In this document: positions 9,861 to 38,874 of the stretch, piece after piece | Layout: each line of letters opens with the position of its first letter | Numbering within the stretch: the first letter of the stretch is position 1 | Assembly: GCA_964019335.1 (NCBI GenBank) | Contig: OZ025664.1 | Coordinates: forward strand, 186,001-250,000 | DNA length: 64,000 nucleotides | Direction of reading: 5' to 3' | Source of the DNA: Diplonema japonicum | Lineage: Eukaryota; Protista; Euglenozoa: Diplonemea | Program-made: the position numbers and the translations under genes | The notes under the pieces: model-generated | What the model was told of the DNA's origin: nothing | Databases searched by the model: none | The model's input: only the letters and a program-made list of their open reading frames with translations

Positions 9861-9932
9861 TCCGCTATAGTACAGTGGTTAGTATACCTGGCTTTCACCC
9901 AGGCGACCCGGGTTCGAACCCCGGTGGCGGAA
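9861..9932 (+). tRNA. tRNA-Glu(TTC)
   Basis: Acceptor TCCGCTA/TGGCGGA; anticodon arm CCTGG-CTTTCAC-CCAGG; T loop TTCGAAC; T-run downstream. Confidence 0.97.
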
Positions 9933-9987
9933 CTTTTTCTCGACTCAAATACAAATACAAATACAAACAAACAGAAAGGGTGAAAAA

Positions 9988-18626: not shown

Positions 18627-19113
18627 GTTTTTTTTTGATGAGTAAAAGTTATGTTTCTACACACACGCCCACCCCCGGAAAAAAAAAGTGCACCGTCTTT
18701 GGTTCCCTGCCGTGTATTTTCTTTTTTTTTTTTTTTCTATGGTGGGTTTGTTGACTTTTCAAGTTTCTTTCCTATCATAGTGATTTTTTTTTGATGGTTT
18801 TCTTTCTTTTTTTTTTCATTCTTTCCTTGTGTCCTTTTTTTTCACAACCCCCTTAGTGTTTCTCTGCCCTCAACCCCTCGTTGTCCCCCCTTTCCCAGTG
18901 AACAAAATAAAAGGGGGGGAAAGTAAGACCTTGATCCCCTCTTTTCTTTTCTTTAGTATTGATTCTTTTTTTTTTTTTTTTTTTTTTTTTGAAAACTTTT
19001 TTCTCCGAACCTTTGTTTGTTTTGTTTCGTTTCCTTCATCGAAATATCATTTTAAAAACAGGAGTGGAAGAGGCGGGGGGAAAAAAAAAGAGAGAAAAAA
19101 AAGCACGAGCGAA

Positions 19114-21957
19114 ATGCAAGAAGGTAGGCCCGATCCAACAAAGCAGGGCAGGGTAAATTTTTTAAAACAGCACAACGATGAAAGGAACAAACAACGAGAA
19201 AAAGAGAAGGTAGAAGAGAAGGAGAGATGGGACGAAACGGAAATGGAGGAGAGGGAAAGAACCCCCCGCAGCGAAGACGAGATCGAGCAAAAGCAAGAAG
19301 AGGAAGAAGAACAAGTAATGGACGACGACGAGGAAACCGAGGTTCAAAAACAAGAAGCACAGCTAACCGAGGAGGAGAAAGGAATGATGCTGCTCCCTGA
19401 CGAACTAACCGTCAGCAGCCTGGAGAGAACGGTGACGAAGGACGTCACAAAAACACGGAGATATAGAATCTTCCCCTGCTATTTGATGTTTTTACTAACA
19501 TTCTCTGTTCTTATTGGAGTCGAACAACTCTCATCTGATGACAGATTCTACATGACCGAATCCATAAGGGACGTGACTCTAATTTCCACTTTCAACGATA
19601 TCCACACAGTAGAGAACTGGTACGCTTGGCTCGATACCAGCTTCCGGCGACTTTGGTCTCAACAGGATTCTAACACAGCGTCGACTCCTTTAAACCGTAA
19701 TGTTCTTATAGGAATGGTCGTTCTTCGCCAATGGCGAGCAAAGCCTGTTTATTGCAGCCAATCCCCGCAGCTTCACATGCTGTCCCTCCAGGCTAAAAAT
19801 TTCCTACCACGACTGTGCTACGGCGACTACTCTGAAGGATCGTTGGATGCTACCCCATACGGGCCTAACCTTCAATGGCAACCTTCTAAGAATATCAATT
19901 ACTCTCTAGAGGTTGTGCCTGTCACAGGGCAGCTTCATACTTATGCGTCGTCGTCCGACGCATTTCCTATATTTTTTTACGTGAACACCAGTCTGTCGTC
20001 TGTTCTGCAGGAATTGTCTGTTTTGAAAACGTCGTCTTGGATCGATTCCTCCACACGTGCTGTTGTCGTGGATTTGTTGTTTTACAACCCGAATGTTAAG
20101 GCGTTTGTGCTGTACCACCACATCGCTGAGATCGACACGACGGGGGACCTCATTCCTCTTTCGAAGAGCTCGTACTTTAAGTTCTTGAAGTACAACGCTG
20201 ACAAGCTGAGCGGGTTTATATTCTTCCTCGACATCTTGGTGTTCCTATTCACCGTCATGCTTATCGTCGACATGTGGTGCACAATTAAGAACCAGTACTA
20301 CCTTTACTACGGTTCGATTTACCAAGCTATTAGTTTTTGGGAGATATACATGACAGGCCTCATTGTGTTGCTTGTCATTCGCGGAGCGTATCGGTTTTGG
20401 TTATGGACAGCTGGAACAGAAGTGGGGGAAACGTGGATCCGTGACCATGCTGACAGGTACGGCGGGGACGAGGACAAGCTAATGTTTCAAAATGCTTGCG
20501 ACTATGTGTTGAAGCAAAGGTTCGTGTTGGTGGTGGACGCTTGGGTCTCCATCCTAGCATGGCTGCGGGTCTTCGAGTTCCTACAGTTCAACGAACGGTT
20601 AAACCTCGTAACAGAAACCATGATCAAGTCCATCGGACAGCTCGCAGCCATGATCATCATCTTCCTCATCATTTTGATCGGCTTCACCATCGCCGGTCGT
20701 ATCTTCTACGGCCATGCTATGTTCGAATTCCGTTCTTTCTTCGCCACCGCAGGCTACCTCGTGAGGTTGGTTTTCTCAGCGGATCTCGGCGATTATCTTG
20801 AAATGGAAAAGATTCGTCCTATCATTACCCATCTGTACATTCCTCTCTTCTTCATCCTCACGTGGCTTGTCCTGTTGAACATGGTGCTTGCCATCATCGC
20901 AGGATCCTTCCAAGCCTTGCAAGAACGTGCCACTAAGGATCCTCGTGGATGGATGCCCGCAGAGTTATGGGAAGATTGTAAAAAGACATGGAACAGAGTC
21001 CTCCCGCATCGTGCGCATATGTTGCTTGCAAGAAAGAACAACCGCCCGCCACCGGAAGACAGCGTACAGGTCAGGCTTGATTTGCTGCCGAGGTTGCAGA
21101 TAATGAACGAAGCTGGGAAGAAACCTGGCGAGACAGAGGTTTTCATTCCGAAACAAGATTTCTTAGCAGAGGCATGCAAAGTGATGCGTCCGGAGACAGC
21201 AGAGAGGGTGTATAATAAAGCTGCTGCGGACATCAATGGTGCGCAGGAAAAATCGTTCAAGCTTGGGGAGAGGTTTGCCTTCCATCTTAACAAGAGATTG
21301 CTGGTGATCGAGTCGCAGATTCATGGCCAGCAGGGCAACATAGACAGGATCCCTGAGATCGAAAAACAGTCCCTTAGAAAGCACATCATCAATTTACAGC
21401 CCAAGGTCGACAGGCTGAACGAGTTGCAAGACGACATCAGACGGGAGCTGTTCCTGATCCACCACAACCTTCCCATCCACTTCGACGAGGTGCACCAGGA
21501 CCTCAACCACCAGATGGCCAACTTGGAACAGATTACCTCACAGAGAGTTGCCCCTCCTCTGCAAGAACTAGTCGAAAAAACCCGGAACGCCCGCCAGTTG
21601 TGATCTCCACTTCCAAACACACCAAATATTATTATAGATTATTGTACCATTAGAGTAGAGTATTATCTCTTTTTTTTTTTTTGTTGTTGTTGTTGTACTC
21701 CCAGTAGTTTCTTGCAGGTGATGTCTCTTGATGATGTTATCTTGAACACTTCTGTGCACACTGATCCGTCGCGAGCACGGTGGTCGGCTGAAGAAGCATC
21801 GGAGCAGAGTGCCAAGTGCTTCGAGATGTTGGACAACGAAATGAAGGTGCTGAGTGAGGGGCTGCGAGACGAGAATGATGTCAGCGTGGTAGAGCTCATA
21901 AGAGAGATGGTGGCGGCAAAGGAAAGGCTCAAGGTGCTGATGGAATGCCGGGAGTAG
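19114..21957 (+). CDS. Polycystin-2 (PKD2/TRPP)-like cation channel; probable last intron 21597-21704 (unspliced ORF ends at 21603)
   Basis: TOP domain (LIGMVVLRQWR, WIDSSTRAVVVDLLFYNPN), six TM segments, LLNMVLAIIAGSF. A GT-AG intron joins it in frame to the 21712-21957 ORF. Confidence 0.88.
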
Positions 21958-23139: not shown

Positions 23140-23261
23140 CTTTTTTCGCTTTCTTCTTTCTTATCTTGTCTTATGTCCAAAATAAAAAAAATAAAAAATA
23201 AAAAGCAAGGAGCTTCTACAAACCACCTCAGGGAAAAGCAAAACACAACAAAACAGCCAAA

Positions 23262-26217
23262 ATGTCTATGGGTATCGGCGGTGCTACTCCCTTCCAGCAA
23301 AACTCCAACCACCAGACGGCGGCCAACCACCGTATCAGGGACACTCAGGCCTATGACCACACTAAGCAGACTAAAGTAAAGTGTACCTCGTGCGGGATGT
23401 GGGCAACCAAGGGAAGCAACTGCAATTTCTGCAAGCACCCTGCCGGTAGTGATTGGTTGAGTTCCCCTAAAGCAAAGGTGTGGAAAAAAAAAAAAGAGGG
23501 AATTTCACAGATTTGCATTCTCCAATGCTTGCGCCTAAATTATTTTACGCCCAGGATCCGTTAAGTGTCACAACAGAATCGCAAAATTACGTGCTAACCA
23601 AATTTCTAATTGCTTTTTCTAGGGCTGGAACGGATTTGCGTCCGGAGCCCAATTTGTGACATATGGATTTTCTGGTAAAATTCTCTGTGAACCTTGGGAC
23701 ATTTTTTTGATTTTCCCCATGTGACCCTGGGGAAACCATGGACAAAGGCCGGGTCACTTAACGGATCCGAAGCGTTAAATTTTTTGCCTCTGGTCAGGGT
23801 GGAGAATGCTGCAGGTGGGAGAGTGTGTCTGCAAAACCAAAAGAAATCGGGTTTGCAGGAACTTGTCCTAACCACATCGGTACAGCTCCATCGGAAGCTC
23901 CTTGCCTGGTCGGCCATGCCCCCGAAGGTCTCCACCGAAGGGGCAGAACTGTTTGTGGGCCTCCTTGCACGCCGTTGTGCTTCTTGATCTTGGACTCTTG
24001 TGCCTGGGCTGCTAGCGGTCGCAGACCGTGGCCGTTCCCACACACCCCACTGGGAAGGTAAATGCCTCCCTGCACTGTGTCCCATGAGTGAATTATAAAG
24101 TAATTTATTATTATTATTATTATTATTATCCCCTAAACGCCCGCGCGGACGTTTTTGTCCTTATTTCAATTTTCGCTAAGTACTTTTTTTTGAACACGGC
24201 CCCTGGACTTCAAAATATGGCATTGTTGCGCGGTTTATTTTGTCTTGGAACTACATTTTGCGTTAAAAGTTTTGTTTTAATTGAAACCGGCAGGGTTGGC
24301 TTAAAATGAAATCAGATGGTCAAAATAGCAGCGAAAACGTGAGTCTCCCCCGACTGGTCAGAAAAAGAAGAAAAAGACGATGAGGCGGTCAAAGAGGGGC
24401 CGGAAACGATGCTTGGGTGGGAGAAATACTCCCAAAGGCCCGAAACATATCATTTCCGTAAAAAGGTGGGCTTAGGACACCTCTAGGTGAAGCGGCCAAT
24501 GAGGAGGGTGTTTTTAATCTTTTTTTTTACACACGCGGTACTTGAGCTCATAGTTTCTTCCACGAACGGTCGTTTCGGTTCAAAAAAACAGCGGAATCTG
24601 AATCTTTCCATCCCAGAGTACAAAATTTGGCTTGGGTTGGTCCTGTTAATGGGTTTACGCTCGGCACCGAACATGAAGAGCTACTGGACAACAAATTCTA
24701 ATTTAACCATCCCGGCTTTTGAGAAAATGGGCAAACCGATTCGTTGACATACAGCGCTACCTCACCTTTGACAACCTGGAAAGCATTTGGAAGGCCTGAA
24801 ACTGCACCTCATGCGCAGGTTTCTTGACATCATTGTCAACCGGTGTAGGACTGTGCGGACCCCTGGCAAGTGGTTGTCTGTTGACGACAGTGTTATCCCG
24901 ACAACAATAAAAGTCATGGAACCACGAAAAAGCAACTCGGTGGGCATCAAGGTAATCGCCACATGCGACTCATAAAACTGTTACCTGGCGAATTTCAACA
25001 TTTTCAGCAAGAAGTCCACAACACAGGACCTAGTCATGCGTACTGTCGACTCCTAAGGGTTTGCTGTCGACCCCTGACCTGCAAGACCAGCTCCAGGGGA
25101 CTGGAGTTCGGCATATGAAAACCCGGAAGTGGACCATGGTCGTTTTTTATTGGTGGAAAGCTGTGTTGCCAACCCCTCCATAATCTGGAAGAAGAGCAGG
25201 GAATGTGGCAGAAATTATGGCTTCCCGAGCTTCAAAGAAGAACTTGTTGGCAAGCTTCTCACCCATGCCCCCAAAACCGATAGCACACACCGTCACCGAC
25301 CCCCAAGCGCAAACACGCTAGCAATGAGGATTCCCTCACTCAGAAATACCCAAAACGTCTCGATTTGACCCTAAATCACACCTCCGAGACCATGATGAAC
25401 GGAACGAAGGTGAGGACGGTGCTCTATGCTGTTCCTGGGTGCGGGAAGAAGGTGCAAACGTGGTGCCCCTGTTGCAAAACCCCCTTATGCAAAACGTGTT
25501 TTTTACCCTTGCATGCTACCCCAGCTGGAAAAAAAACTCACAAGTTGCTTTTTTCATTCCACAGCCCCAAAAAGTCTCCAGACTGACCTCAATCCTAGAG
25601 TTCAGGGCACCAAATAGGGCTGAATGCTGCCCTATTTACCCCAGCCATAACTCCACGGACCCCCCACGACAAGACCCCCCAAAATCGGACATAAAAAGTA
25701 CACCTTCAATCCCCCTCTTACACACATAGTTAAGTGTTCTCATCTGAATCTGGCACCTGGAATTGAAAATTTTAGTACCGTTTACCCTTTCCTTGCACCT
25801 TCCTATGGTTGCATGCTGCCCTTTTTTTGAGTATTTAAAGCAACAACGAAAATGGGGGGGTACCGTAGATAGGCTCCGGGCGTTTAGGGGTTATTATTAT
25901 TTTTATCCGAATTATAAAACATGGGGCGTTTAGCTCAGTGGTAGAGCGCCCGTTCTGCATACGGGAGGTCGAGGGTTCGAACCCCTCAATGTCCACTTTT
26001 TTGTTGTTAATTTTCTCACCTGCAATCACAGACCAACACCGAGAAGGTGCCCAAGAGGAAGGAAAAGACAACTGTGACAGAGAACGCGCACACTCACCAG
26101 CACCGTGATGTCACGTCTTACGAACACACCAAACAGACCAAGGTGAAGTGCACTTCGTGTGGTTGCTGGGCGAAGAAGGGCGCAAACTGCGGTTTCTGCA
26201 AGAGGCCTACGGCTTAA
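23262..26217 (+). CDS. Small protein with two C4 zinc-ribbon repeats; exon 1 23262-23477, exon 2 26032-26217, 2554-nt intron
   Basis: Each exon encodes one copy of Y(D/E)HTKQTKVKCTSCGxWAxKGxNCxFCK. Exon 2 has no ATG and follows CACAG; the phase-0 GT-AG join is in frame. Confidence 0.85.
24130..25890 (+). mobile_element. Decayed, internally deleted piggyBac element
   Basis: 14-bp TIR CCCCTAAACGCCCG / CGGGCGTTTAGGGG with TTAT on both sides. Transposase remnants with stops: FFTHAVLELIVSSTN, WLGLVLLMGL, KSYW, LSVDDSVIP, GIKVIATCDS, and C-terminal WCPCCKTPLCKTCFLPLH. Confidence 0.9.
25924..25995 (+). tRNA. tRNA-Ala(TGC), intronic, with C33
   Basis: Acceptor GGGCGTT/AATGTCC with G3:U70 and A73; D arm GCTC/GAGC; anticodon arm CCCGT-TCTGCAT-ACGGG; T arm GAGGG-TTCGAAC-CCCTC; T-run downstream. 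Confidence 0.93.
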
Positions 26218-27164
26218 TTTTGTGATTTCCTGTCCTTTCCTTTTAACTTGACTCCTCACCTCTTTCAGCAAGGTTTCCCTTATTGAGTGCTGGCGACAAA
26301 ATTGTCCCTGAAAACATGCTTATATGCATGGGTAGTTAAGAGGACCTCCAAAAAATGGGGAAACCAAACATTATTTATCTTGAAAGTTTGAAAAACCTGT
26401 TTCAGATGCAAGTTTTACCCCCCTTTTTTTACCCCATTTTATTTTTGAAAAAATAGTCACTTCCTTGTTTTATAAAGAAAAGTCCCATGATACTTAGGAA
26501 GGAAGGGAACCAAAGAAAATATTCTGACCTTTACAACTTTTTTATATACCCTGTGAGAGTTCAAGCAAAGATGCGACATTCGGGTGCTTCTTCCCCCACC
26601 CCCGACTGTGTGAATTACCAGCAGGCACTCACCAATGTCCATTCTTTAACCCCTTGTATTTTTTTTTTTATTACTTTTTTATTCTTTTTTCTGTTATTCA
26701 CCCAAAGTATCCCCCCACTTCTTTTTCCTTCTCTGTCCCAGAGCCAGGCCTTAAGACTGGTAGTTGGTGATGGTATACCGCAAGGCTGGGTCGCAGGGAT
26801 CGGTTTTATTTACCCCCTTTTTTTTTCTTTTTTTTTGCCCTCTCTGGTTTCTTTTTCTGTTTTTTTCCCTTTTTTTTTTTTTTTTTTTTTTTATTTCCTT
26901 TTTTGATGACGAAAAGGAAAAGTGGGGAAGGTCTAGCATCCCATCTTCCTGGGACACAAGGTGATGAGAAGTCAGGCATACCTTGCCCTTCACGAAGTTC
27001 AAGAGAAGTTCTTCTTCTTTTTCGAAAATCAGATTGAACTCTGGTATCGTCGCAGCATCTGCAGGCTGTCCAGTGGGGGCATGAATTGCAAAGCAGCCCG
27101 CATTTCCTTCACCAATCTTTTCCGGATGTTTCATGGCCACATTCTTCGTCTCCCTAAAAAAAAA

Positions 27165-27673
27165 TAGCTATTTATTTTGCCAACAAATTATGAGTCATTA
27201 TTTAACTCGAGTTCCTGAATTTTTTGCACGAGGGCCCTGCGGGCCCTCGTGCAAAAAAACGGTAACAAGAGTTAAATAATTTGGCTCATTTGGCGGCAAG
27301 TAAATCGTTTTATTTCACTCTTCGTCATTTGAGTCACTCACTCTTCGCTGCTTTCACTGCTGTTTTTTTTCACGCAGGTCAGCCTTTTTGGGGATTTCCT
27401 AAGGTAATATGGGTTGCTATTTCGCTGTGGCATTTAAAGGGGAAGTAAGCACTTATTCCCACTTTTAAGGGCTGGAATGGCCTCAGATGGCCAAAAATAG
27501 TCAAAATACCCCGTCCCCAAAAAAATTTTTCAAGGGGTTGGATACATTTTTTCACTCTGAAGCCCCATAATTTAACTGCAAAATCTCATAATTTAACTAG
27601 TTAAATTATGGCGATTTCGCGTTAAATTATGAGGCCCCTAGTGAGTGAAGAAAATGACGAAGAGTGAAATAAA
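27165..27673. mobile_element. Non-autonomous hairpin/asymmetric-IR element, copy 1
   Basis: ~140-nt fold-back (27165-27306, centre GCACGAGGGCCC-TGC-GGGCCCTCGTGC), then IRs at 27309-27342 and 27640-27673 around a core containing ATAATTTAACT-type repeats. Confidence 0.8.
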
Positions 27674-27737
27674 GAACCTAAAAAGGTTCCAATGTAGGGA
27701 GAGAGGAAAAAAAAAAAAGCCAAGGCAAAAAAAAAAA

Positions 27738-28307
27738 CTATTTATTGCCAACAAATTATGAGTCATTATTTAACGCGAGTTCCCGAATTTTTTGCACGAG
27801 GGCCCGCAGGGCCCGAGTGCAAAAAAACGGGTAACGAGAGTTAAATAATGGCTCATTTGGCGGCAAGTAAGTCGTTTTATTTCACTCTTCGTCATTTGAG
27901 TCACTCACTCTTCACTGCTTTCACTGCTGTTTTTTTTCACGCAGGTCAGCCTTTTTGGGGAGTTTCCTAAGGTAATATGGGGTTGCTATTTCGCCATGGC
28001 ATTTAAAGGGGAAGTAAGGCACTTATTCCCACTTTTAAGGGCTGGAATGGCCTCAGATGGCCAAAAATAGTCAAAATACCCCCACCCCAAAAAAAATTTT
28101 CAAGGGGTTGGGTGCATTTTTTTCCACGGCGAGACTCATTTTCCCACTCTGAAGGGCCATTATTTAACTGCAAAATCTCATTATTTAACTAGTTAAATAA
28201 TGGCGATTTCGCGTTAAATAATGGCCGTTTCGCGTTAAATAATGGCCATTTCGCGTTAAATAATGAGGCCCCTAGTGAGTGAAGAAAATGACGAAGAGTG
28301 AAATAAA
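27738..28307. mobile_element. Hairpin/asymmetric-IR element, copy 2 (tandem, near-identical to copy 1)
   Basis: Direct repeat of 27168-27673 with extra TTTCGCGTTAAATAATGGCC units and an altered hairpin centre. Confidence 0.8.
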
Positions 28308-28318
28308 AAAAAAAAAAA

Positions 28319-29040
28319 GAGAAAAACTACAAACACGACAAGCAAATTTGGATTTTCCACCAAACTCTGTAACCTGTTTTTTGCCCTTTGTCCACGGTAA
28401 CTCGAATATATTTCTCTATTGTTCACGGAAACTTGCAATTTCATATCCACCAAACACGTTTTCAAAATATTTTGTCCACCATCCACGGTAACCTCGAAAA
28501 TGTTTCCCACCATCCACGGTAACCACCAAGGCTTTTTCCCCCCCCGCCCGCCTTCTGTCAGGGTCCTGTGTGAAGATAACCTCAAGAACGGGGAGACCCT
28601 CGTTGGGGGATAAAAGGAAACTGAGCGAAGGAGAGGGGACACACCTGCGGCAACTGCAAGAAAGTGGGGCACAATGCCTGTTCTTGCAAGAACCCCCACC
28701 AGACTCCTAGAAGTGCTCTTCTGAGCTGAAGCAGACCCAGCTAACGTAGTGTCATAGTGTAGAGTCATTCCCCCCCCCTTTTTTTTTCCTTTTGCCTAAT
28801 CATTTATTCCTATTGTTGTAGTGCGCTCTATATTTCGCCAAATAGTCAAAAAAACGAAAATGCGAAAGGTTCCGTGTTTGGTGGAAATTCGAAATTAGGT
28901 TTCCTAAAGGAAAATTTTGATGGTTTGCAGGGAACGGTGGAAAAATGAAATTGGGTTTCCGTGCTTGGTGGAAAATGAAATTCGGGTTGGCTTGAACGGT
29001 GGAAAATTTTCATTTGGTTGTCGTGTTTGTAGTTTTTCTC
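28319..29040 (+). mobile_element. MULE/foldback-type deletion derivative
   Basis: TIR GAGAAAAACTACAAACACGACAA(G/C)CAAAT; subterminal tandem CCACGGTAACC-type repeats inverted at the two ends; internal remnant RTGRP...CGNCKKVGHNACSC (zinc knuckle typical of MULE transposase C-termini); inserted in an A-run. Confidence 0.8.
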
Positions 29041-29070
29041 AAAAAAAGAAAAAAAAAAAAGAAAAAAAAA

Positions 29071-29289
29071 ATGGCAGAAAAAGTTCCCCCGTACTTCCCG
29101 CTGTCAGTGGAGCCCTGCCACGAGACCACCAAGGCGTTTTTCGAGTGTTTTGATGAACACGGAGAGATGAAAGACAGAACCGATAAAGAAGCGGGCGTGC
29201 GTGGGATCCGAGCCTGTGTGAAGCAGCTGGAAGCGTACCGAAAATGCATGGACAAAAATATCCATTTGAGCAAGCATTATGACCCTTGA
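29071..29289 (+). CDS. Small twin-Cx9C-like (CHCH) protein, probably mitochondrial intermembrane space
   Basis: 72 aa; CHETTKAFFEC and CVKQLEAYRKC helical Cx9C pairs. Confidence 0.75.
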   Translation: MAEKVPPYFPLSVEPCHETTKAFFECFDEHGEMKDRTDKEAGVRGIRACVKQLEAYRKCMDKNIHLSKHYDP

Positions 29290-29412
29290 TGGAATTTACC
29301 CCCCCCCCCTTTTTTTCCCTCTTAATTTGTTCCCAAGATTTTCCCCCACAACCAACACAGTTCCACACGCGAGAAAAAAAAAAGGGGGGGTAAAAAAAAA
29401 AAGAGGGAAAAA

Positions 29413-30110
29413 ATGAACCGTCTATTCGGTAGGAGCTCTGCACCAAAGACGCCCGCTCCAACGATGGAGGACACGGGTGAAAGGATGGATAAAAGGGTGG
29501 GTCAGGTTGATGGAAGGATTGCGAAAATCGACGATGAGTTGAACAAAATAAGAGAGCAGATGAAGCGAACAAAGGGGCCGGGTCAGGCCAGGCTAAAGCA
29601 GCGCGCAATGCAGCTGTTGAAACAGAAAAGGATGTATGAGGGACACAAGGATCAGGTCGAAAGCCAGCGTTTCAACATGGACCAAATGCAGTTCACGGCA
29701 GATTCAGTAAAGGACACAATTGACCAGGTCTCCTGTTTGAAAGCAACGGCGCAGCAGCTTAAGGTTGACCAGAAGAAGGTCAACATAGATGAAGTGGAGA
29801 GGATGCAAGATGAGCTTCAGGACCTTTATGACGATAATAACGAAATCCAAGAGATTCTCGGCCGGAGCTACGCGATGCCAGATGAAGTCGATGATGAAGA
29901 GCTCGAGGCAGAACTCGCTGGGCTTGAAGACGACATGCTGTGTAGGTATGTAATAGTGTGAGGAAAGAAGCGTAATTTTTTTTTTTTTTTTTTTTTTGCA
30001 GCAACGATACGTCGTACCTGGACACTGCCCTTGCACCGCCTTCAGAACTCCCTGCAACGAAGGAAGAAGAAACCGATCCTGCAAGGCTTGAGGAACAGCT
30101 TGGGTTATAG
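29413..30110 (+). CDS. VPS60: ESCRT-III subunit CHMP5/VPS60 (intron 29946-30001)
   Basis: [44 protein letters not shown]; spliced tail DTSYLD. Confidence 0.93.
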
Positions 30111-30591
30111 AAAAAGAAAAAAAAAAGAATTCTTGCCTTTTTCGAAGTGTCCCTCTTTTTTTTTTCTTTTTTTTTTTTCTGTTTGTTACGTAGCAATAAA
30201 AAAAAAACTTTTCTGCTCACTCCCTTTTTTTTTTTTTTTTTTTTTTTTTTCGCCCCCATTTTTTCTTCTTCCTGATTCGCTATCTATTTTTTTTTTTCCC
30301 TTTTTTTTTTTTTTTTTTTTTTCTTTTTTTACTGCTTCGTTTTGCCATAAATTTTTTTTATCCAATTCTCGTTTTCAGTTTTCTCTTCCAAAGGGAAAAA
30401 AAAAAAAAGAGGGGGGAAAGGCACTTGACAACTTTTTCTTTTTCTCCCTCCCCGCCCTCCACCCAAACTAATTTTGTCCCTCCCCCTCACCCAAGTATTT
30501 CTAACCTTTTTTTTTTTATTCCCCCCTCCACCACTTTTGTTTGAAAATAACAAAAAAATCACGACAAAAAAAAAGAGGGGGTAAATATAAA

Positions 30592-31260
30592 ATGTTTTTT
30601 GGGTCGCCCCCTAAAGCTTACGCTGAGTCTGCATTGAAGAAGCGTCAGGGGTATGGCAAGGCTGTGACACAGCAAGCAACAACCCATGTGGCACCGTCTC
30701 CTCTAAAGAAGAAGGAGAAAACTGCGTTTAATGGGTCTCCGGACAGAAAGCCAGGATGGACCAAGGCTAGGTATATGGGAAATTATATTGCGTTCCCTCA
30801 GGAGATGCAGCAGGAGCATCACCAGCAACCCCGTAGCAAAGCAAAGAAGGGGGAGATGAGGAAGGATTGCGGTACTGGACGGGACTTCGGCAGGAAGATG
30901 ACCAATAAATCAAGAGGCATGAGCCCACGGAGGGGGAGAAGTGCCTCTGCGTCCCCACACCGAAACCATCCTCATCAGTCCCCTTCCCCTTCTCCAAACA
31001 GAGATTACAGCCCTATACGTCCTGTAGGGATCCACCCCTCCCCAGCGCGTGCTAGGTCACCAGCTCCTTATCTCGCTGTTTTGAACAGCGGAACGAATCT
31101 CAGTTACATTACTCTTCTTTGCTCTGCTAAACAAACACCTTGCACATCACCCTCTCGCACTCGCCACGAGGCACTGCCTGTCACGCTGCAGGCGCTCGAG
31201 CTGGCAGGAGCGTCTGACTTGCAATACATCTCTGCTTTGTTGAATGCCAAACGAGGGTGA
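30592..31260 (+). CDS. Hypothetical basic, SP/RS-rich protein
   Basis: ORF between low-complexity spacers; no family recognised. Confidence 0.65.
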   Translation: MFFGSPPKAYAESALKKRQGYGKAVTQQATTHVAPSPLKKKEKTAFNGSPDRKPGWTKARYMGNYIAFPQEMQQEHHQQPRSKAKKGEMRKDCGTGRDFGRKMTNKSRGMSPRRGRSASASPHRNHPHQSPSPSPNRDYSPIRPVGIHPSPARARSPAPYLAVLNSGTNLSYITLLCSAKQTPCTSPSRTRHEALPVTLQALELAGASDLQYISALLNAKRG

Positions 31261-31926
31261 ATACCGGGAAAATGGTCGAAAGAAGAAGGGTGAAAGAAAA
31301 GAGAAAAAAAAAATGCTCTTTTTTTTTTTTTTTGTATTCTTCTCCCGAGATTTTTTTTTTTTTTTTTTTGAATTTTTTTTTTCCTTTCCACATCCCCCTT
31401 TTTTTTCTTCAGCGTCCTGCCACATACCGCAGGTCCCCCCTTTTCCCCAAAAAGTTCCTGTTTTTTTTTTTTCGCCTTGAGAAAAAAGAATAAAAAAGAA
31501 ATTAAAAGAAATGCCAAGTTACTGCGTGCTGTACCAGAACTTTCACCTTGGAAAAAAAAAACCCCCCCTCCTCCCCTATTACCCCCACCTCTTTTTTCTT
31601 CTTTTTTTCTCCTGTACCCCCCTGTTTCCCTCTCCTTGTAGTTGCTTTAAGAAATAAGAAAGAAACCACAAATATAAAAAAGGCTTTTGAAAAATTAAAA
31701 GAAAAAAATTCACGTAAAAAAAAAAAAAAAAAAAACCACCCAAAATAGTACCCTGAAGTTGCTCTTTATTTTGTTTTCAAATTTTGGGTACTAACAAAAA
31801 AAAAAAAAAAAAAAATACCAAGAAGAGAGGGAAAACAATTCTTTTTTTTTTTTTTTCGTTTTTCTTTTTTGTTTTTGTTTTCCCACCTACATTTAAAAAC
31901 CACCCACACACCAAATAAAAGGCATC

Positions 31927-32484
31927 ATGTTTTTTGCCATATATGTTTCTGCGGTGACAGCGTCTGCATGTGTACCCATGAAAAAAGTAGGCGACCTCGC
32001 TTTCACTGCATATGAAGAAACTTCAATGGGGGTGCAATCATTGGCGTGCGTTGGAAAATGTCCAGAGGGGATCGAACTTGAGAGTGCGACATGCAAGAGA
32101 CAGTCTCACTCTGGGGGTACGTGGAAATGCCCTAAATACAAGCTGAATATAGAAACGTACACGGTCGAGAACACAAGGGTGGGCTGCGAAATGTGCGGGC
32201 GAAACATGTTATTAATCGACAGCTGCTTCTTGCGGTATTCCTTAAGGAAGATACAGATACCGGACTCTTCTCACAAGAAGAACAAGACTGAGGCGGCCCC
32301 GCCCAGCGGTTCTGTTCCGTTGGCCGTGGTTTTTTTTACCTGTTGCTGTGTTGCGCTTTTCTTCGCCCGCATGTTTATGAAGCTTCCCTTAGGTGACGTG
32401 GTGACACAGCAGCGTTGTGAAAGGGTTTACACTGACTCACACCGTCGAAGCCTCTCAGGTGCAGTCTCAAGGGTGAAGTGTTGA
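31927..32484 (+). CDS. SARAF/TMEM66-like single-pass membrane protein
   Basis: Signal peptide; luminal cysteine pattern LACVGKC...ATC...WKC...VGCE...SCFLRYSL; TM helix. Confidence 0.7.
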   Translation: MFFAIYVSAVTASACVPMKKVGDLAFTAYEETSMGVQSLACVGKCPEGIELESATCKRQSHSGGTWKCPKYKLNIETYTVENTRVGCEMCGRNMLLIDSCFLRYSLRKIQIPDSSHKKNKTEAAPPSGSVPLAVVFFTCCCVALFFARMFMKLPLGDVVTQQRCERVYTDSHRRSLSGAVSRVKC

Positions 32485-32782
32485 TGCACCCAAATGAGCA
32501 ATGGAGTCGGGAACGGAACCGTGCAACTTTTTCTCGTTAAATTTTGAACCCTTTTGTTTCTTCTTCATAGAAACCCAAAACGTGAACAGGTTTTCTTTGA
32601 ACGGACGGGAAAAAAAAAAAAAAAAAAAAGAAAGTTTCAAAAAATAATGATAAGTTAACAACTATTTTTCTTCTCCCTTTTTCTATTTACAAAAAAAAAA
32701 AAAAAAAAAAAAAAAAGTGGTAGCATGAAGTACTTGTCAAGACCTGTGCCGTGTGCACATAACAAGTGCTTTGAACCGACTC

Positions 32783-32831
<49 letters not shown>

Positions 32832-33317
32832 TCATCTCGTGGTGTATTTTGAGAAATCTTGCGAAACACACGAGGAACTGCTAAGACATATAATATATCG
32901 TATTTATAGGGGGAAAAAAGAAAAGAAACAAATCAGACTGGCAACATGTCTGGACTGAAAATTAACAGAAAACAAATACTTGTCAGTCCGGCACTTTGTT
33001 CTACAATATTTATTTTTTTGCAACCTTTTGTATCACTCAAGTGAAATAATATACAGAAAAAAAAAAAAAGAATTCATTAGCGTGGATAACAACGCATAAA
33101 ATATAAATGGTTGCCCCTATATTTTTCATTTTTTTTCTCGTTCTTTTCTTTATACTACTCTGCGAAGCTCTTATTTTTTTTTTACTTTCAGTATACACCC
33201 TCCTTTTACGCAATCCCCCGTCTCCCTTCAAATCACTCTTGCTTTGAAAATATATGGTACTGAAGTAAAATCGGGCTAAAAAAAAAAATCTATAAATGTT
33301 CAAATTTAATTCAATTT

Positions 33318-33511
33318 TTTTATCTGATAGTTCAGAAATTTCTTCACTCCTAACCCCCCCTATAATCTGATTACCCCCCTCTCATAATTTGATAGCTCAG
33401 TTATGGGCAGGACGTAGGTGTTTATGGCGTGGCTGCCAAATTATAGGGGGGAAAGTGACATTATTGGGGACAGAGTGAAATTCTTTTTAACACATTTGGG
33501 CTCAAGATCAT

Positions 33512-33543
<32 letters not shown>

Positions 33544-34205
33544 ATCAAATGCCGAAAACGAAGAAGGAAGAGAGTCTTCTGCCCGAAATAAGCAAAGCAC
33601 AGTACCAAAGACGAAGAACCGACTGAAGTCGCTCATCTTAGGAAGCTGAAGAAAAACGGCGCTGCCCCCTACTTCTCTTTGAACCAAGTACTCCCAGATA
33701 AGGGCAGTTTTTAAGGAAAAGTGCAACCAGAAGGTTCATTTCGAACGGGGGGATCTCGAGGAGCTCATGTCTATGGAGTGCCCTGGGTCTAAGCCGCTGA
33801 ACCGCTTCTTACTGTACCGTGCTTTGTTTGTACGGAGAACTATAACCTGGAAAGGTGCAATATCGCAGGTCAACAGGGTTGCCTGGGGGACTAAAAATGT
33901 GTAGGGTCACCGTACTTCCGCCTGAATCAGCTAAAAATAGGCCGTTTTTCATAATTTGATAGCTATTATTGACAGTTGATAGCCCATAATTTGGTTTTGG
34001 GTTTTTGGCCCACTTTCTCGGTCACTCGGAGTGACTCAATTTCTGAACTATCAGATAAAATTACTTACTTTGCGCCAAAATATGGCCATCCCATTTACTC
34101 TCGAACCGTTTTTTTTTTTTGACCTCGGGCCCTGTGGGCCCTCGGCCAAAAAACCCACGATTCTCGAGTAAATTATGGCCATAATTTGTTGCAAATAAAT
34201 AGCTA
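33318..34205. mobile_element. Hairpin/asymmetric-IR element, copy 3 (divergent subfamily, opposite orientation)
   Basis: IRs TTTTATCTGATAGTTCAGAAATT-(TCT/GAG)-TCACTC at 33318-33349 and 34029-34060. Fold-back 34063-34205 aligns in reverse with the copy 1 hairpin. CATAATTTGATAGCT repeats inside. Confidence 0.8.
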
Positions 34206-34277
34206 TTTTCTCCCCCATCCTGTCTTTTCCTTTTTCTGTTTTATCGTCTTCGGCAAAAAAAAAAAAAAAAAAAAAAA

Positions 34278-34712
34278 GGGAAAAACACCGTTCACGGTAA
34301 GCAAATAACTTTTTTCCACCGTTTCCTTAAACCTAAAATTTTTTTTCCACCGTTACTGTAATCATCAAGTTTTTCCCTTATGCAACTACAGACTTTTTTT
34401 CCACCAAACACGGTAACCTGTATCATTTTATGCCTGTTTAGGGTTTATCATAAAATGTAGTATGAGGTGCAAAAATAATGATGGGATGATGAGAGTGGAA
34501 AAAAAGTTCCAACATACATGGTTTAGTGGAAATAAGATTAGGTTACCGTGGACAGTGGAAACTTTATTAAAAAAAAACCGTTTTGGTGGAAAAAAAAGTT
34601 ATGATTACCGTACTTGGTGGAAAAAAAGTTCCAAGTTACCGTGAATAGAGGTAAAAATTCTGCTTACAGTACTTGGTAAAAAGTTATTTGCTTACCGTGA
34701 ACGGTGTTTTTC

Positions 34713-34714
<2 letters not shown>
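34278..34714. mobile_element. MULE/foldback-type MITE related to 28319-29040
   Basis: ~37-bp TIR G(G/A)GAAAAACACCGTTCACGGTAAGCAAATAACTTTTT; inverted subterminal TTCCACC..CACGGTAA repeats; A-run flanks. Confidence 0.82.
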
Positions 34715-34744
<30 letters not shown>

Positions 34745-34853
34745 AAAAAAATCGAACGTCAAGACTAACACAACGAGACCATATTATTTATATGCCAACA
34801 CCCCTTGTTCATCATTTCACAGCCTTTTGTGTAAAAAAAAAACAAAACAAAAC

Positions 34854-36728
34854 ATGGGGAAGCGTTCCAAGAGTGTGCAGAAAGCAAATGTGAGGAGCTG
34901 CTCAACTGGGTCCAACCAGAGCTGGGTGCAGAAGGACGCCCTCGTCGCACCCATAAAGATCAAGACACTGGAGACCGAGCTGAAGGCCGAGAAGAATGAA
35001 AAAACGCTCATCGGGAAGGCTCTGCGCAAGAAAGTGAAAAACCTGAACGAACTCCAGCACGAAGTAGAGGCCTTGAAGGGTGAGAAAACAACCCTCGAAA
35101 CGCAACTGAGCTCAGAAGCAACGACCAAGAAAAGCATCTCCAAAAAGCTCGAGCGCAAGCTGGAAGAGGTCAAGACAAAGTCACGAGCACGTGAAACCGA
35201 ACTCAGATCCGAAATGGAAATGCAAACCGACGAGATCGCCGACTTGAAGCAGCAACTCGAACAATCAGTTCAAGACAAACAGGAGGCCGTGTCCCGTGTC
35301 GAAGCTGAGCTTGAGAAGACAAACCAGAAGCTCGCCAAAGCCGCAAACACAAAGAAGAAGATCGACAAAACAAACGCCTCACTCAATAAGAGCAACGAAG
35401 AGAAGCAGTCGACCATCGACAAGCTGGAGAGCACCATTTCAACCGGCGAGAAGAAAATTCTGATGCTTGCTGAGAAGCTGAACGAAGCCAACGACAAGGT
35501 GGACGCTCTGCAGGAAGAGCTGGAAGCAGTGAACAACACCGCCGCCGCCCGCAGTCAGGCCGCTGAGGAGAACACGAAATCGCTCGAGCGCAAGCTTGAC
35601 AGCCTCAACACCGTGGAGGACAAGATGGTCGACATCACCGCCCACAACAGAGCCCTCGAGGAGCAGCTCAAGGCAACAAACACCAAAATCGGTGAGCTCA
35701 AGTCCAAACTATCAGAACAAATGGAGGAAAACGAAGTCATGTCGCGTTCGAACGAAGACATGCAGACCGAACTGGACCGTTTGAAGCAGCTTGCCGACAC
35801 GGCAGGGGCATTGGTGACGGAGGCGAAGAAGCTGGGCGACGAGGTTAAGACGCTGAAGAAGGAGTCCCGTTCCAAGACGAAGAAGATCGAGCAGATGGAG
35901 AAAGACCACACGGCAAACAAGCAAATGATCGAAACGCTCGGCGAAGAGAAAGCAGAACGCGACGCAATGATCAAAGACATGGCTCAGAACAAGCACATGC
36001 AACGCATCGCTGACGAGAACGAGCTTGTGGAGAAGATCGAAAGGGGAAGAGCAAGCATGGGGATGACCACCGACACCAGTGTGGAACGTCACGGAAGGGG
36101 AGGCAGCATGTACGTCGTGGAGAGCAAACCACTTCTCAACGTGGAGAGCCCAAGGTTCACAGCACCAGACGCAAGGCTAGCATCGATAGGCTCATGCAAC
36201 GTGGAAGAACCTTTGGAACTAGGCTCACCGTACTCGCAAAAGCACGTTTCTATCAACCGCTGCCACACACCAGTGAGGGAGGTGGTCAGGGAGAGGACCC
36301 CAACCATGCACCACACAGAGCATGTTTCCATCGGTCGCTGCCACACACCAAAGAGATGCACAACTAACAACGGTCCTACTGTGAGCGAGAGGCCCATGCA
36401 CCACCAAGACGATGAGTACCAAGCACCCGTTACCACACCAAAAGCAAACACCGCACCTTGCATCTACGGTACAACACCTTCCAAGCAGGACAAGGAGAAC
36501 TACAAGGCAGCGCTTGATGAACAAGTTGCCACGAGAAGGGCTCAGAGTAAGCGCAAGGCCGAACCCGTGACGGACTTCTTCCGTTTCGGAGTCGCCGGAT
36601 CAGGTGCCCCAATCAGGAATTCTCAGAACGAAGTTGTGACGAATGTCACCTTCACACGTTCCACCAACTACCTCCCTGTGGACCACCCGATGTCTGCAAA
36701 GAAATCTAAGAAGCCTCGTCATTTCTAA
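34854..36728 (+). CDS. Long coiled-coil protein with a low-complexity C-terminal region
   Basis: About 400 aa of E/K/L heptads; duplicated HVSI(N/G)RCHTP motif. Confidence 0.85.
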   Translation: MGKRSKSVQKANVRSCSTGSNQSWVQKDALVAPIKIKTLETELKAEKNEKTLIGKALRKKVKNLNELQHEVEALKGEKTTLETQLSSEATTKKSISKKLERKLEEVKTKSRARETELRSEMEMQTDEIADLKQQLEQSVQDKQEAVSRVEAELEKTNQKLAKAANTKKKIDKTNASLNKSNEEKQSTIDKLESTISTGEKKILMLAEKLNEANDKVDALQEELEAVNNTAAARSQAAEENTKSLERKLDSLNTVEDKMVDITAHNRALEEQLKATNTKIGELKSKLSEQMEENEVMSRSNEDMQTELDRLKQLADTAGALVTEAKKLGDEVKTLKKESRSKTKKIEQMEKDHTANKQMIETLGEEKAERDAMIKDMAQNKHMQRIADENELVEKIERGRASMGMTTDTSVERHGRGGSMYVVESKPLLNVESPRFTAPDARLASIGSCNVEEPLELGSPYSQKHVSINRCHTPVREVVRERTPTMHHTEHVSIGRCHTPKRCTTNNGPTVSERPMHHQDDEYQAPVTTPKANTAPCIYGTTPSKQDKENYKAALDEQVATRRAQSKRKAEPVTDFFRFGVAGSGAPIRNSQNEVVTNVTFTRSTNYLPVDHPMSAKKSKKPRHF

Positions 36729-37244
36729 TTATTTTTTTCCCTCCTCCCTGTGTTACCTTAAATTAGAATTTTTTTGTCATTTTTTTCTTATATTTTTCTA
36801 GACTTTCTCCCCACTCCTCCCCCTGCTCCTTCCTTTGTTTTTTTAGAAGAAAAAAATGATGGAAGGGTGACTGTTCATGATTAGAAAAAAATTATAAAAA
36901 GAAGGGAAAAAAAAAAAAAAAAAGAAAAGAAGAAAAAGGATGGGGAAGGTGGTGCCCTGAATGAGCCCCCTTTTATTTTTGATAGAAAATGTACGATTTT
37001 CTTCTTTGTTTTTCTTTTTGCTGTTTTTTGAAAATTGGAGGGGTATTTTACCTAATAAAAGTACTCGTTGAATAGAAGAAGAAAAAAAAAACGGAAACGG
37101 AAAAAGAAGAAGGAAAAAAAAAAGTCTCTCCCTCGCTGTCTTAGAACCTTTTTTGTTTTGTTTTATTTTATTCTGCTTTTCACTTTGGGAAATACAAAAA
37201 AAGGAGGAAAATATAACAAAAAAAAAAAAAAATAGGAAAATGAC

Positions 37245-37901
37245 ATGCCCAAAAACTACACGACGCGTGACTGTGTAGAGATCGAAAAGACAGGTAGAAA
37301 ACAGGTAGTCCATAAAAGGGACCAGGAAACTACATTATGTGTTGCTTCCTGGTGCTTGAAGAGAGTAGAAATACAAGAAAAACATGAACGGATGAAACTG
37401 ATCCGTGTGATGAAAATCGCAATGGAAGGGTGGGACTGTGCACTGGGGTCGGAGCGGAGTTGGAGGGAAATTGCGTTAAACGCAGGCTATCTGCTTTCGC
37501 AGTCCTTCAACGAAAGGATAAAATTGCTGCACACCGAACTGTACCACCGAAGCAATTTGAAGGAAAAATGGATCTTTGCTGTGCAAAACCTGGCGCAGAC
37601 CTCTTCTGAGGCCTCATCAAGACTACCGTGTTCACTGCTCTCCTCCACCGCATTGTTCAAGCCGAAAATCACCTGCCTTCCCGGAACCGTACTGAACGTA
37701 GCGATAAGAGAAGAAACAAGCACGCGGTCGATGATAGGTACGGACCAGCACTGTGTGCGTAAGAAACTGAAAAATTTTGAAGAGCTTGAGGCACTCAGCT
37801 CTTCACTCCCCCCGAAGACCTCCAGTAAGTTCCGCGACAAGGTTTTAAAAGCAATTCAAACTGCAGAGGATACATGGAACGCATTTACATGCACAATTTG
37901 A
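37245..37901 (+). CDS. Hypothetical protein
   Basis: 218-aa ORF after an A-rich leader. Confidence 0.65.
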   Translation: MPKNYTTRDCVEIEKTGRKQVVHKRDQETTLCVASWCLKRVEIQEKHERMKLIRVMKIAMEGWDCALGSERSWREIALNAGYLLSQSFNERIKLLHTELYHRSNLKEKWIFAVQNLAQTSSEASSRLPCSLLSSTALFKPKITCLPGTVLNVAIREETSTRSMIGTDQHCVRKKLKNFEELEALSSSLPPKTSSKFRDKVLKAIQTAEDTWNAFTCTI

Positions 37902-37962
37902 GTTTCACACAAAATCAAAACCCACTTTCTCCCCAACTATTACACATCCAGGTCCATTCATA

Positions 37963-38874
37963 ATGCCCGCGGCCAGTCAAAAAGACCTAGCATCGGGAAT
38001 GGATCACATGTGTCGGGAGATTCGAAGGTACGGCTCCTTGACAGGTTTGCGATATGTGGACTTCTCGCTGAGAAGCCAGGAGGAAATCTTCATCCACATC
38101 AAGGAACGGGACGGGTGTTGTTTTCAAGGAAATAACATAAGAGTGGTAGAACAAGGTCAGTCTCCAAGTAGCCCTGCCCGGGAGCGACCAGGAACGAGCG
38201 AAGGAGTGATATTGATGCTTGGTGTGTATCGAAGATACGAGCGGCCGATGGTGTGGTGTAAGACACGATCTAAGGAGCACACTTTCCAATTCGAGGATGT
38301 CCCTGGGTGGTCCAAGTCACCTTCCCTCCGAGGCGTCAAGAGCAACCACGATTACCCTATCTTCTTGCAAAGCTCCGCTAATTGGCAGTCCTACCCAACA
38401 GAAACTACCTTTTACCATTTTCTGTCTGAGATATTCAATACTTTCATCAACCCTCCTCCTGCCAATCCATTGGCTGTTGACTTTGCTTCTCCTCTTTTGT
38501 CTCAGCCGTCCACCGAGAAACTGTTATCGGTATGTATGAATAATTGGGAGGTTCTTTTTTAGGGAGTAGACGCTTTTGATGACAATCCTTATTATTATTC
38601 GCAAAATTATCCGTCATCCGGCATAGTATAGTGGTTAGAACACCTGGCCCTCACCCAGGAGACCGGGGTTCAATTCCCCGTGCCGGAATTTTTTAATATC
38701 ATCAAACAGGTTTCATCTCTTATTAACGTTTTATCCCACTTGCCCCCAACAGATGAGATTCAAAAAGATGTTGAGAAGTATGTGTACATGCCAAGCTCCT
38801 CAATTCATCTCCCTTTCCGCAGATTACACAAAATATACGCGCAAGAAATGCTAAAGATTGCGTCGGAGGGATAG
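37963..38874 (+). CDS. Hypothetical protein, 3 exons (introns 38530-38709, which contains a tRNA, and 38778-38822)
   Basis: GTATGT donors and AAACAG/CCGCAG acceptors give the in-frame TEKLLS|VSSLINVLSHLPPTDEIQKDVEK|LHKIYAQEMLKIASEG*. Confidence 0.75.
38617..38688 (+). tRNA. tRNA-Glu(CTC), intronic, with C33
   Basis: Acceptor TCCGGCA/TGCCGGA; anticodon arm CCTGG-CCCTCAC-CCAGG; T arm CGGGG-TTCAATT-CCCCG; T-run downstream. Confidence 0.93.

Follow-up and report, generated by a model that had tools for sequence, protein, structure and literature searches.

Uridine 33 is among the most conserved nucleotides in biology, and its textbook role is to form the U-turn of the anticodon loop. In a 64,000-nucleotide stretch of the genome of the diplonemid Diplonema japonicum (contig OZ025664.1, positions 186,001 to 250,000; hereafter the window, to which coordinates refer unless otherwise indicated) the genes for tRNA-Ala(TGC) and tRNA-Glu(CTC) specify C at this position. 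The same residue (C33) is present in 46 elongator tRNA genes, belonging to 13 anticodon families, in the genome as a whole.

The tRNA-Leu(GAG) of Saccharomyces cerevisiae is also an elongator with an encoded C33 (PMC13492127), but it is the product of a single-copy, non-essential gene, whereas in D. japonicum we are dealing with 46 genes, whole families serving major codons, and dimorphism between T33 and C33. Eukaryotic initiator tRNA-Met of animals and plants carries an encoded, unedited and functional C33, and C33 is encoded by the initiator genes of D. japonicum too. The initiator is, however, one tRNA which enters the P site, while the elongators of the 13 families have to decode at the A site. 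A natural G33 makes the tRNA-Ser(CAG) of Candida albicans another functional elongator which departs from U33. Here the residue is a purine, a single tRNA is concerned and the change is tied to codon reassignment, while no sign of a code change was seen in D. japonicum.

A second group of relatives involves editing of C32, which is known from kinetoplastids, plants and Vibrio. Kinetoplastid tRNA-Thr(AGU) is converted from C to U at position 32 by ADAT2/3 together with Trm140; it comes from the same phylum, involves a neighbouring C of the anticodon loop and might serve as a model for the correction of C33. It differs in position, in being restricted to one tRNA species and in that the editing, no more than a possibility in D. 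japonicum, has been demonstrated. In Vibrio cholerae, TrcP is responsible for C-to-pseudouridine editing at position 32 of tRNA-Tyr (PMC9553926). C-to-U chemistry in the anticodon loop followed by pseudouridylation is a possible fate of C33 as well, though TrcP is a bacterial enzyme dedicated to a single substrate at position 32. What is new in D. japonicum is the scale: C33 occurs in 46 genes spread over 13 families, some of which are fixed for it while others contain both T and C. The literature searched contained no description of C33 in elongator tRNAs of diplonemids or other Euglenozoa and none of editing at position 33, and the published account of the D. papillatum genome, supplements included, lists numbers of tRNAs without their sequences.

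tRNA genes of the window

Three tRNA genes were called in the window by ARAGORN, and these score 66.6, 65.8 (Ala) and 61.0 (Glu(CTC)) bits against Rfam RF00005, for which the threshold is 29 bits. The tRNA-Ala(TGC) gene lies on the plus strand at 25924–25996 and has C33 at 25955, in the loop T-C-TGC-A-T; its anticodon arm reads CCCGT/TCTGCAT/ACGGG, and both G3:T70 and A73 are present. It is followed immediately by a run of six T residues resembling an RNA polymerase III (Pol III) terminator (25997–26002, plus strand). The tRNA-Glu(CTC) gene (38617–38688, plus strand) has C33 at 38649 in the loop C-C-CTC-A-C, an anticodon arm CCTGG/CCCTCAC/CCAGG, and a similar T6 run at 38689–38694 on the same strand. 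Both align with RF00005 over its full length (1–71). They thus have the cloverleaf, scoring above the gathering threshold, the identity elements (G3:T70 and A73 in Ala) and the downstream terminators of canonical elongator genes of Pol III type 2, and depart from these at U33.

Neither is an initiator. Their anticodons are those of Ala and Glu, their T-loops are GGTTCGA and GGTTCAA, respectively, and the A1:U72 pair, the GGG:CCC pairs of the anticodon stem and A54, which mark initiator tRNA-Met, are lacking. The third gene, tRNA-Glu(TTC) at 9861–9933 (plus strand), has T33 in the loop CTTTCAC and belongs to a genomic family of four T33 copies and one C33 copy; the poly(A) tail of a retroelement stops approximately 15 nt upstream of it. 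A first-pass annotation of the window had reported C33 in the Ala and Glu(CTC) genes, which it regarded as otherwise intact, and a normal U33 in Glu(TTC), and on each of these points it proved exact.

Position 33 in the genome

A census of position 33 was made by searching the genome from which the window derives with patterns which extend from the A box to the B box, the matches being counted by eye after exclusion of those which were not tRNA genes. The genes covered number 250, all of them elongators, and fall into 38 anticodon families; Ser, Tyr and SeC, any Ala-AGC and genes whose A or B box is atypical are missed by the patterns. C33 was found in 46 of the 250 genes (18%) and in 13 of the 38 families.

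Two families, Val-CAC (10 genes) and Ala-TGC (4 genes, identical to one another and including that of the window), are entirely C33, no T33 gene of either being detected genome-wide. The Lys families are nearly so, with 13 C33 to 1 T33 in Lys-CTT and 5 to 1 in Lys-TTT. Glu-CTC is evenly divided, the window gene being one of ten copies which are identical but for position 33 (5 C33, 5 T33), as is Thr-TGT (2 and 2). The remainder contain a single C33 copy each, against 3 T33 copies in Gln-TTG, 4 in Glu-TTC, 6 in Ala-CGC, 8 in Phe-GAA, 9 in Thr-AGT, 10 in Ile-AAT and 17 in Asp-GTC. No C33 was found in the census among Gly (22 genes), Leu (20), Arg (21), Pro (14), Cys (10), Asn (10), elongator Met (10), Gln-CTG (9), Val-AAC (8), His (5), Trp (3), Ile-TAT (3), Val-TAC (2) or Thr-CGT (1). 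One Tyr gene, seen with ARAGORN, has T33. The phenomenon thus reaches well beyond the two genes first noticed and, with C33 in 4/4 Ala-TGC, 5/10 Glu-CTC and 46/250 genes overall, is far in excess of chance or assembly error. As a background control, 121 environmental (metagenomic) Val-CAC genes with an identical anticodon arm, mostly of bacterial type, included none with C33, and two scans of viral contigs with the C33 arms of Lys-CTT and Val-CAC gave no match.

The distribution is not even with regard to the first anticodon base. Genes for tRNAs with a pyrimidine at position 34 are richer in C33 (42/135) than the others (4/115). Counted by family, 6/26 with pyrimidine 34 have C33 in at least half of their copies versus 0/12 of the others (one-sided p ~0.08), which is suggestive only.

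The search patterns fix positions 8–11, 14, 18–19, 53–58 and 61, at which variants would escape notice, and leave some 40 positions of each gene at which differences could show. Over the 53–63 nt compared per copy, the members of each family are identical except at position 33 and at a compensated 28:42 pair in Arg-ACG. ARAGORN alignments of full-length genes gave the same invariance, with one additional change, at position 67 in Arg-ACG. The downstream flanks of the ten Glu-CTC genes are unrelated, and these copies are therefore not recent duplicates; with unrelated flanks and identical bodies, it must be selection or conversion that keeps the tRNA bodies constant, and position 33 alone is left with both T and C. 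A lone C33 copy occurs in each of seven families and a lone T33 copy in each of two, which points to repeated toggling at this site.

The reliability of the sequence bears directly on these counts. The published genome of D. japonicum strain YPF1604 (62.30 Mb) was assembled by hifiasm from 102x PacBio HiFi reads with a quality value (QV) of 59.4 (PMC13598402), and the genome note says nothing on nuclear tRNAs. Because of a QV of 59, dozens of errors which all fall at tRNA position 33 are not credible. One could imagine a sequencing or assembly artefact in which a modified thymine is miscalled as C, base J being found in Euglenozoa. A miscall driven by context would not, however, be expected to vary between loci with identical surroundings, as T and C do in Glu-CTC (five copies each), nor would an assembly of this depth and quality be expected to err at 46 sites which share one tRNA position. 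Contigs of four runs cover the 200-base bin around 25955 with no difference listed, and the independent DNA data set X5 lists none at the tRNA-Ala gene, though in neither case does a listed piece explicitly bridge 25955. We regard an artefact as barely conceivable.

Functional state of the C33 genes

C33 and other departures from U33, the initiator apart, are taken for probable marks of a pseudogene in a survey which covers eukaryotic tRNAs (PMC9023262), and one might accordingly suppose that the C33 copies are silent or defective, the work being done by T33 copies or by other isoacceptors. This could hold for the lone C33 copies of Thr-AGT, Ile-AAT, Phe, Asp, Ala-CGC, Gln-TTG and Glu-TTC. T33 paralogues which might substitute are, however, absent from Val-CAC (0/10) and Ala-TGC (0/4) and limited to one gene each in Lys-CTT and Lys-TTT. 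The first-pass annotation had considered that U33 copies of its two isoacceptors elsewhere, were the C33 copies unexpressed, would tell against its proposal; such copies exist for Glu-CTC (5/10), but none was found for Ala-TGC.

In appearance the C33 genes are ordinary Pol III genes, having intact A and B boxes, no other mutation and RF00005 scores which match those of T33 genes (61–66 bits). A run of five to ten T residues terminates each of the ten Glu-CTC copies, whether C33 or T33, and poly(A) tails of retroelements lie approximately 10 nt upstream of copies of both kinds. In yeast and Dictyostelium the targeting of retroelements to tRNA genes depends on the Pol III machinery, and by extension the same may apply in D. 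japonicum. Some 8–15 nt upstream of several different tRNA genes lies the 3' end of one and the same retroelement (…ATTGGTATTTTGA and then poly(A)); it was seen upstream of the window gene at 9861 and of the Glu-CTC copies at loci L064, L065, L200 and L201. Very few decayed tRNA genes were seen. One degenerate tRNA-Asp-like copy, at C30:49158–49211, has extra bases in the region of the anticodon loop and is unlike the intact C33 genes.

In the supported open reading frames (ORFs) of the window GTG accounts for 45% of Val codons, AAG for 57% of Lys and GCA for 34% of Ala. On these shares the C33 families serve major codons, Val-CAC reading GUG, Lys-CTT and Lys-TTT reading AAG and AAA, and Ala-TGC reading GCA. 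Because the genes are intact and, in the copies checked, have terminators, because no T33 gene for Val-CAC or Ala-TGC was detected, and because major codons are served, the cell cannot be ignoring its C33 genes. A pseudogene explanation is, in our estimate, highly improbable, and even when pooled with that of an artefact it must be considered very unlikely.

No Ala-AGC gene was found in three genome searches, which does not prove its absence, while Ala-TGC (4) and Ala-CGC (7) were. If the absence is real, GCU and GCC would be read by the C33 tRNA-Ala(UGC), an arrangement of decoding which is unusual for a eukaryote.

Probable toleration of C33

Our favoured explanation, held with moderate confidence, is that the mature tRNAs keep C33 and work with it. 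The requirement for U33 would have been relaxed in this lineage, so that exchange of T and C at position 33 behaves as at a nearly neutral site and C33 drifts to different frequencies in different families as gene copies are born and lost. It would thus have become fixed or nearly fixed in Val-CAC, Lys-CTT, Lys-TTT and Ala-TGC, have reached about half of the copies in Glu-CTC and Thr-TGT, and be sporadic in the other seven families.

The initiator tRNA-Met genes of D. japonicum (C14:602151, C14:638950, C44:163728, C44:163848, C44:201702 and C55:375913; loci L192, L193 and L196–L198) have C33 in six of six cases. A C33 initiator in the same cell as the C33 elongators supports toleration. It also makes D. 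japonicum, a unicellular organism, an exception to the generalization that initiators have U33 in unicellular and C33 in multicellular organisms (PMC8887486). The natural C33 of yeast tRNA-Leu(GAG) is functional, and its replacement by U has minimal effect (PMC13492127). The KEOPS machinery, which makes the t6A (threonylcarbamoyladenosine) modification, accepts C33 in organisms with a C33 initiator (PMC8887486), which would remove a barrier to C33 in Lys, Thr and Ile tRNAs; t6A machinery which accepts the C33 initiator of D. japonicum would be expected to accept these elongators also.

Several considerations weigh against toleration. C-to-U editing is abundant in diplonemids and in the kinetoplastids, their sister group, and would account for the neutrality of position 33 equally well. 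Selection normally acts against C33 in other eukaryotes and would have had to be relaxed in D. japonicum. The RNA data, like the rest of the 21 public runs, are assembled (Logan) contigs in which mature tRNAs are not represented, and the published library is poly(A). In yeast and Escherichia coli C33 blocks formation of t6A37 (PMC8887486), and there is also the view, noted above, of C33 as a mark of probable pseudogenes (PMC9023262). Finally, the concentration of C33 in pyrimidine-34 tRNAs, though only suggestive, may hint at the context preference of an enzyme or at selection rather than at pure drift.

Possible editing of C33

The principal alternative is that a tRNA cytidine deaminase, for which ADAT2/3-type or cytidine deaminase (CDA)-type proteins are candidates, converts C33 to U33, or C to pseudouridine, and so restores the canonical residue. 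T-to-C changes in the genes would then be truly neutral and would accumulate by constructive neutral evolution. We think this possible, but doubtful enough to be placed second. Perfect correction, too, would produce what is seen in the 250 genes, where variation is confined almost entirely to position 33 and this position toggles in 13 families. Diplonemids are prolific in C-to-U editing, and the kinetoplastid sister group edits C32 of tRNA-Thr(AGU) through ADAT2/3; the Thr-AGT loop CTAGTAA was found in D. japonicum. The bias towards pyrimidine 34 could mirror the sequence preference of a deaminase.

Six loci in the genome match PF00383, among them one which is TadA/ADAT2-like and one which is CDA-like. 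A tRNA-acting deaminase of the CDA fold is therefore available, but as such proteins are generic to eukaryotes this is weak evidence. The family is not expanded, and with only six loci of ordinary composition an expansion of deaminase genes can be ruled out. The two Met tRNAs share the loop context C-N-CAT-A-A, yet the elongator (CTCATAA) has C33 in none of 10 genes and the initiator (CCCATAA) in all 6; loop contexts being alike and states different, context alone does not decide. Yeast tRNA-Leu(GAG) functions with C33 unedited, and editing at position 33 was not found for any organism in the literature searched. If editing is nonetheless the answer, it would be a previously unknown C33-to-U33 (or C-to-pseudouridine) reaction on at least 13 nuclear tRNA species, with the dimorphism of T and C as its constructive-neutral footprint and the cell now dependent upon it; we advance this tentatively. 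Editing at C33 and lineage-wide toleration were the two possibilities offered by the first-pass annotation, and both survive as the leading explanations.

Possible selection for C33

C33 might instead be adaptive in particular tRNAs, by breaking an internal run of four T residues (a weak Pol III terminator), by tuning the speed of decoding or by marking a sub-pool, for example for mitochondrial import. With T33, Ala-TGC (T31–T34) and Lys-TTT (T33–T36) would contain the only internal T4 runs in the gene set, and these two families are C33 in 4/4 and 5/6 genes, respectively. In the census high-frequency C33 is, moreover, restricted to tRNAs with C34 or U34. There is, however, no T run to be relieved in Val-CAC (10/10 C33), Lys-CTT (13/14) or Glu-CTC (5/10), the single C33 copies scattered over seven families look like drift, and families which are wholly C33 leave no sub-pool to be marked. 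Avoidance of Pol III terminators thus fails as a general cause, though it may contribute in Ala-TGC and Lys-TTT, which it fits. Resistance to anticodon nucleases was also considered and rejected. Kluyveromyces lactis gamma-toxin, one such nuclease, is indifferent to a U33C change and cleaves the altered substrates equally well. An adaptive origin for C33 appears unlikely.

Genomic location and host introns

The first-pass annotation had placed both window genes in introns of coding regions and had proposed a possible link between C33 and intronic biogenesis. The placement was confirmed for tRNA-Ala. Its host is a GT..AG spliceosomal intron of 2,554 nt (23478–26031, plus strand), for which a splice joint 23475→26030 (the GT..AG cut lying at +2) was found in three RNA-type data sets (X6, X11 and X12); the tRNA ends 36 nt upstream of the 3' splice site. 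Frames were read in each exon separately. Exon 1 (23231–23477, plus strand) has one frame open from an ATG to its end, and exon 2 (26032–26801, plus strand) begins with 61 open codons. The two exons are open in phase and a Cys-rich motif of exon 1 recurs in exon 2, which places the intron within coding sequence.

The host (23231–26801) is a small two-exon gene trans-spliced to a spliced leader; a euglenozoan-type spliced-leader tail (GCTACAGTTTCTGTACTTTATT) adjoins the exon start at 23231 in RNA-type contigs. Its motif, which resembles a RanBP2 zinc finger, occurs twice (HTKQTKVKCTSCG.WA.KG.NC.FCK.P). Contigs of X11 and X12, data sets labelled as different organisms, have the same splice junction and differ by approximately 1.5% in sequence. 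Upstream of the tRNA some 1.7 kb of the intron (24200–25915) is filled by high-copy repeats, with a DNA contig depth of roughly 1000–2400 versus 10–16 for unique sequence; these repeats are consistent with stacks of tRNA-targeted retroelements.

For tRNA-Glu(CTC) an intronic position is plausible on splice motifs and reading frame. The gene lies within a putative 223-nt intron (GTATGT...CAACAG; 38530–38752, plus strand) of a DUF7886 gene, in which GTATGT at 38530 falls on a codon boundary of the ORF and the CAACAG acceptor is at 38752.

The proposed link with C33 did not hold. A C33 Val-CAC gene lies 64 nt from a T33 Gly-CCC gene; a C33 Lys-CTT gene is less than 550 bp from Thr-AGT and Pro-CGG genes, both T33; a C33 Glu-CTC gene is flanked by two T33 Met genes; and of an inverted pair of Asp genes approximately 120 bp apart one is T33 and the other C33. 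Since C33 tracks the anticodon family and not the location, and clusters hold both states, an intronic position is rejected as its cause and must be considered incidental.

Other features

Inverted pairs of the same tRNA gene recur in the genome with starts approximately 120–150 nt apart. They include C3:782922/783045 (Cys), C15:144315/144432 (Ala-CGC), C27:314150/314291 (Leu-CAA), C42:351142/351274 (Asp), C44:163728/163848 (initiator Met), C63:467001/467133 (Asp) and C74:144568/144688 (Asp, T33/C33).

A family of tRNA-like repeats has a run of eight or nine G residues in the region of the D-loop and an intact B box (TAGTCTAGTTGGGGGGGGCTTTGCCCTGTACCTAGGCGAAGCGGGTTCAAACC), and is probably a tRNA-derived short interspersed element (SINE). 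Copies were found at C33:505154, C50:27018, C75:321451, C80:177566, C90:237453, C93:293289, C99:305958, C101:51853 and C105:228319 (C33 here being part of a position label).

Within the window, 27600–28400 is an extremely high-copy repeat, with depths of up to approximately 20,000 in DNA contigs (10–16 in unique sequence) and approximately 35,000 in RNA-type contigs. Direct repeats (GTTAAATWATGGCGATTTCGCG... AGTGAGTGAAGAAAATGACGAAGAGTGAAATAAA) lie at its termini and an inverted copy within it, in the manner of a miniature inverted-repeat transposable element (MITE) or a SINE. A long ORF at 18829–21603 has polycystin and PKD-channel domains (PF20519, PF08016) and specifies a polycystin-type cation channel.

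Implications

D. japonicum is a free-living marine eukaryote in which about one-fifth of the censused elongator tRNA genes are C33, including all of those detected for Val(CAC) and Ala(UGC) and almost all for Lys. The cell must either work with C33 tRNAs or correct them after transcription. Annotation pipelines which down-weight genes lacking U33 would mis-annotate this genome. Should the RNA carry U, a new kind of tRNA editing would be at hand, new both in its site and in its breadth, and it would come from a lineage whose RNA editing is already known to be extreme. If on the other hand C33 is retained, decoding in the A site could do without the uridine of the U-turn on a natural scale, and D. 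japonicum would become a system in which to ask what U33 is for, and how the t6A, wobble-modifying and other enzymes of the anticodon loop cope without it.

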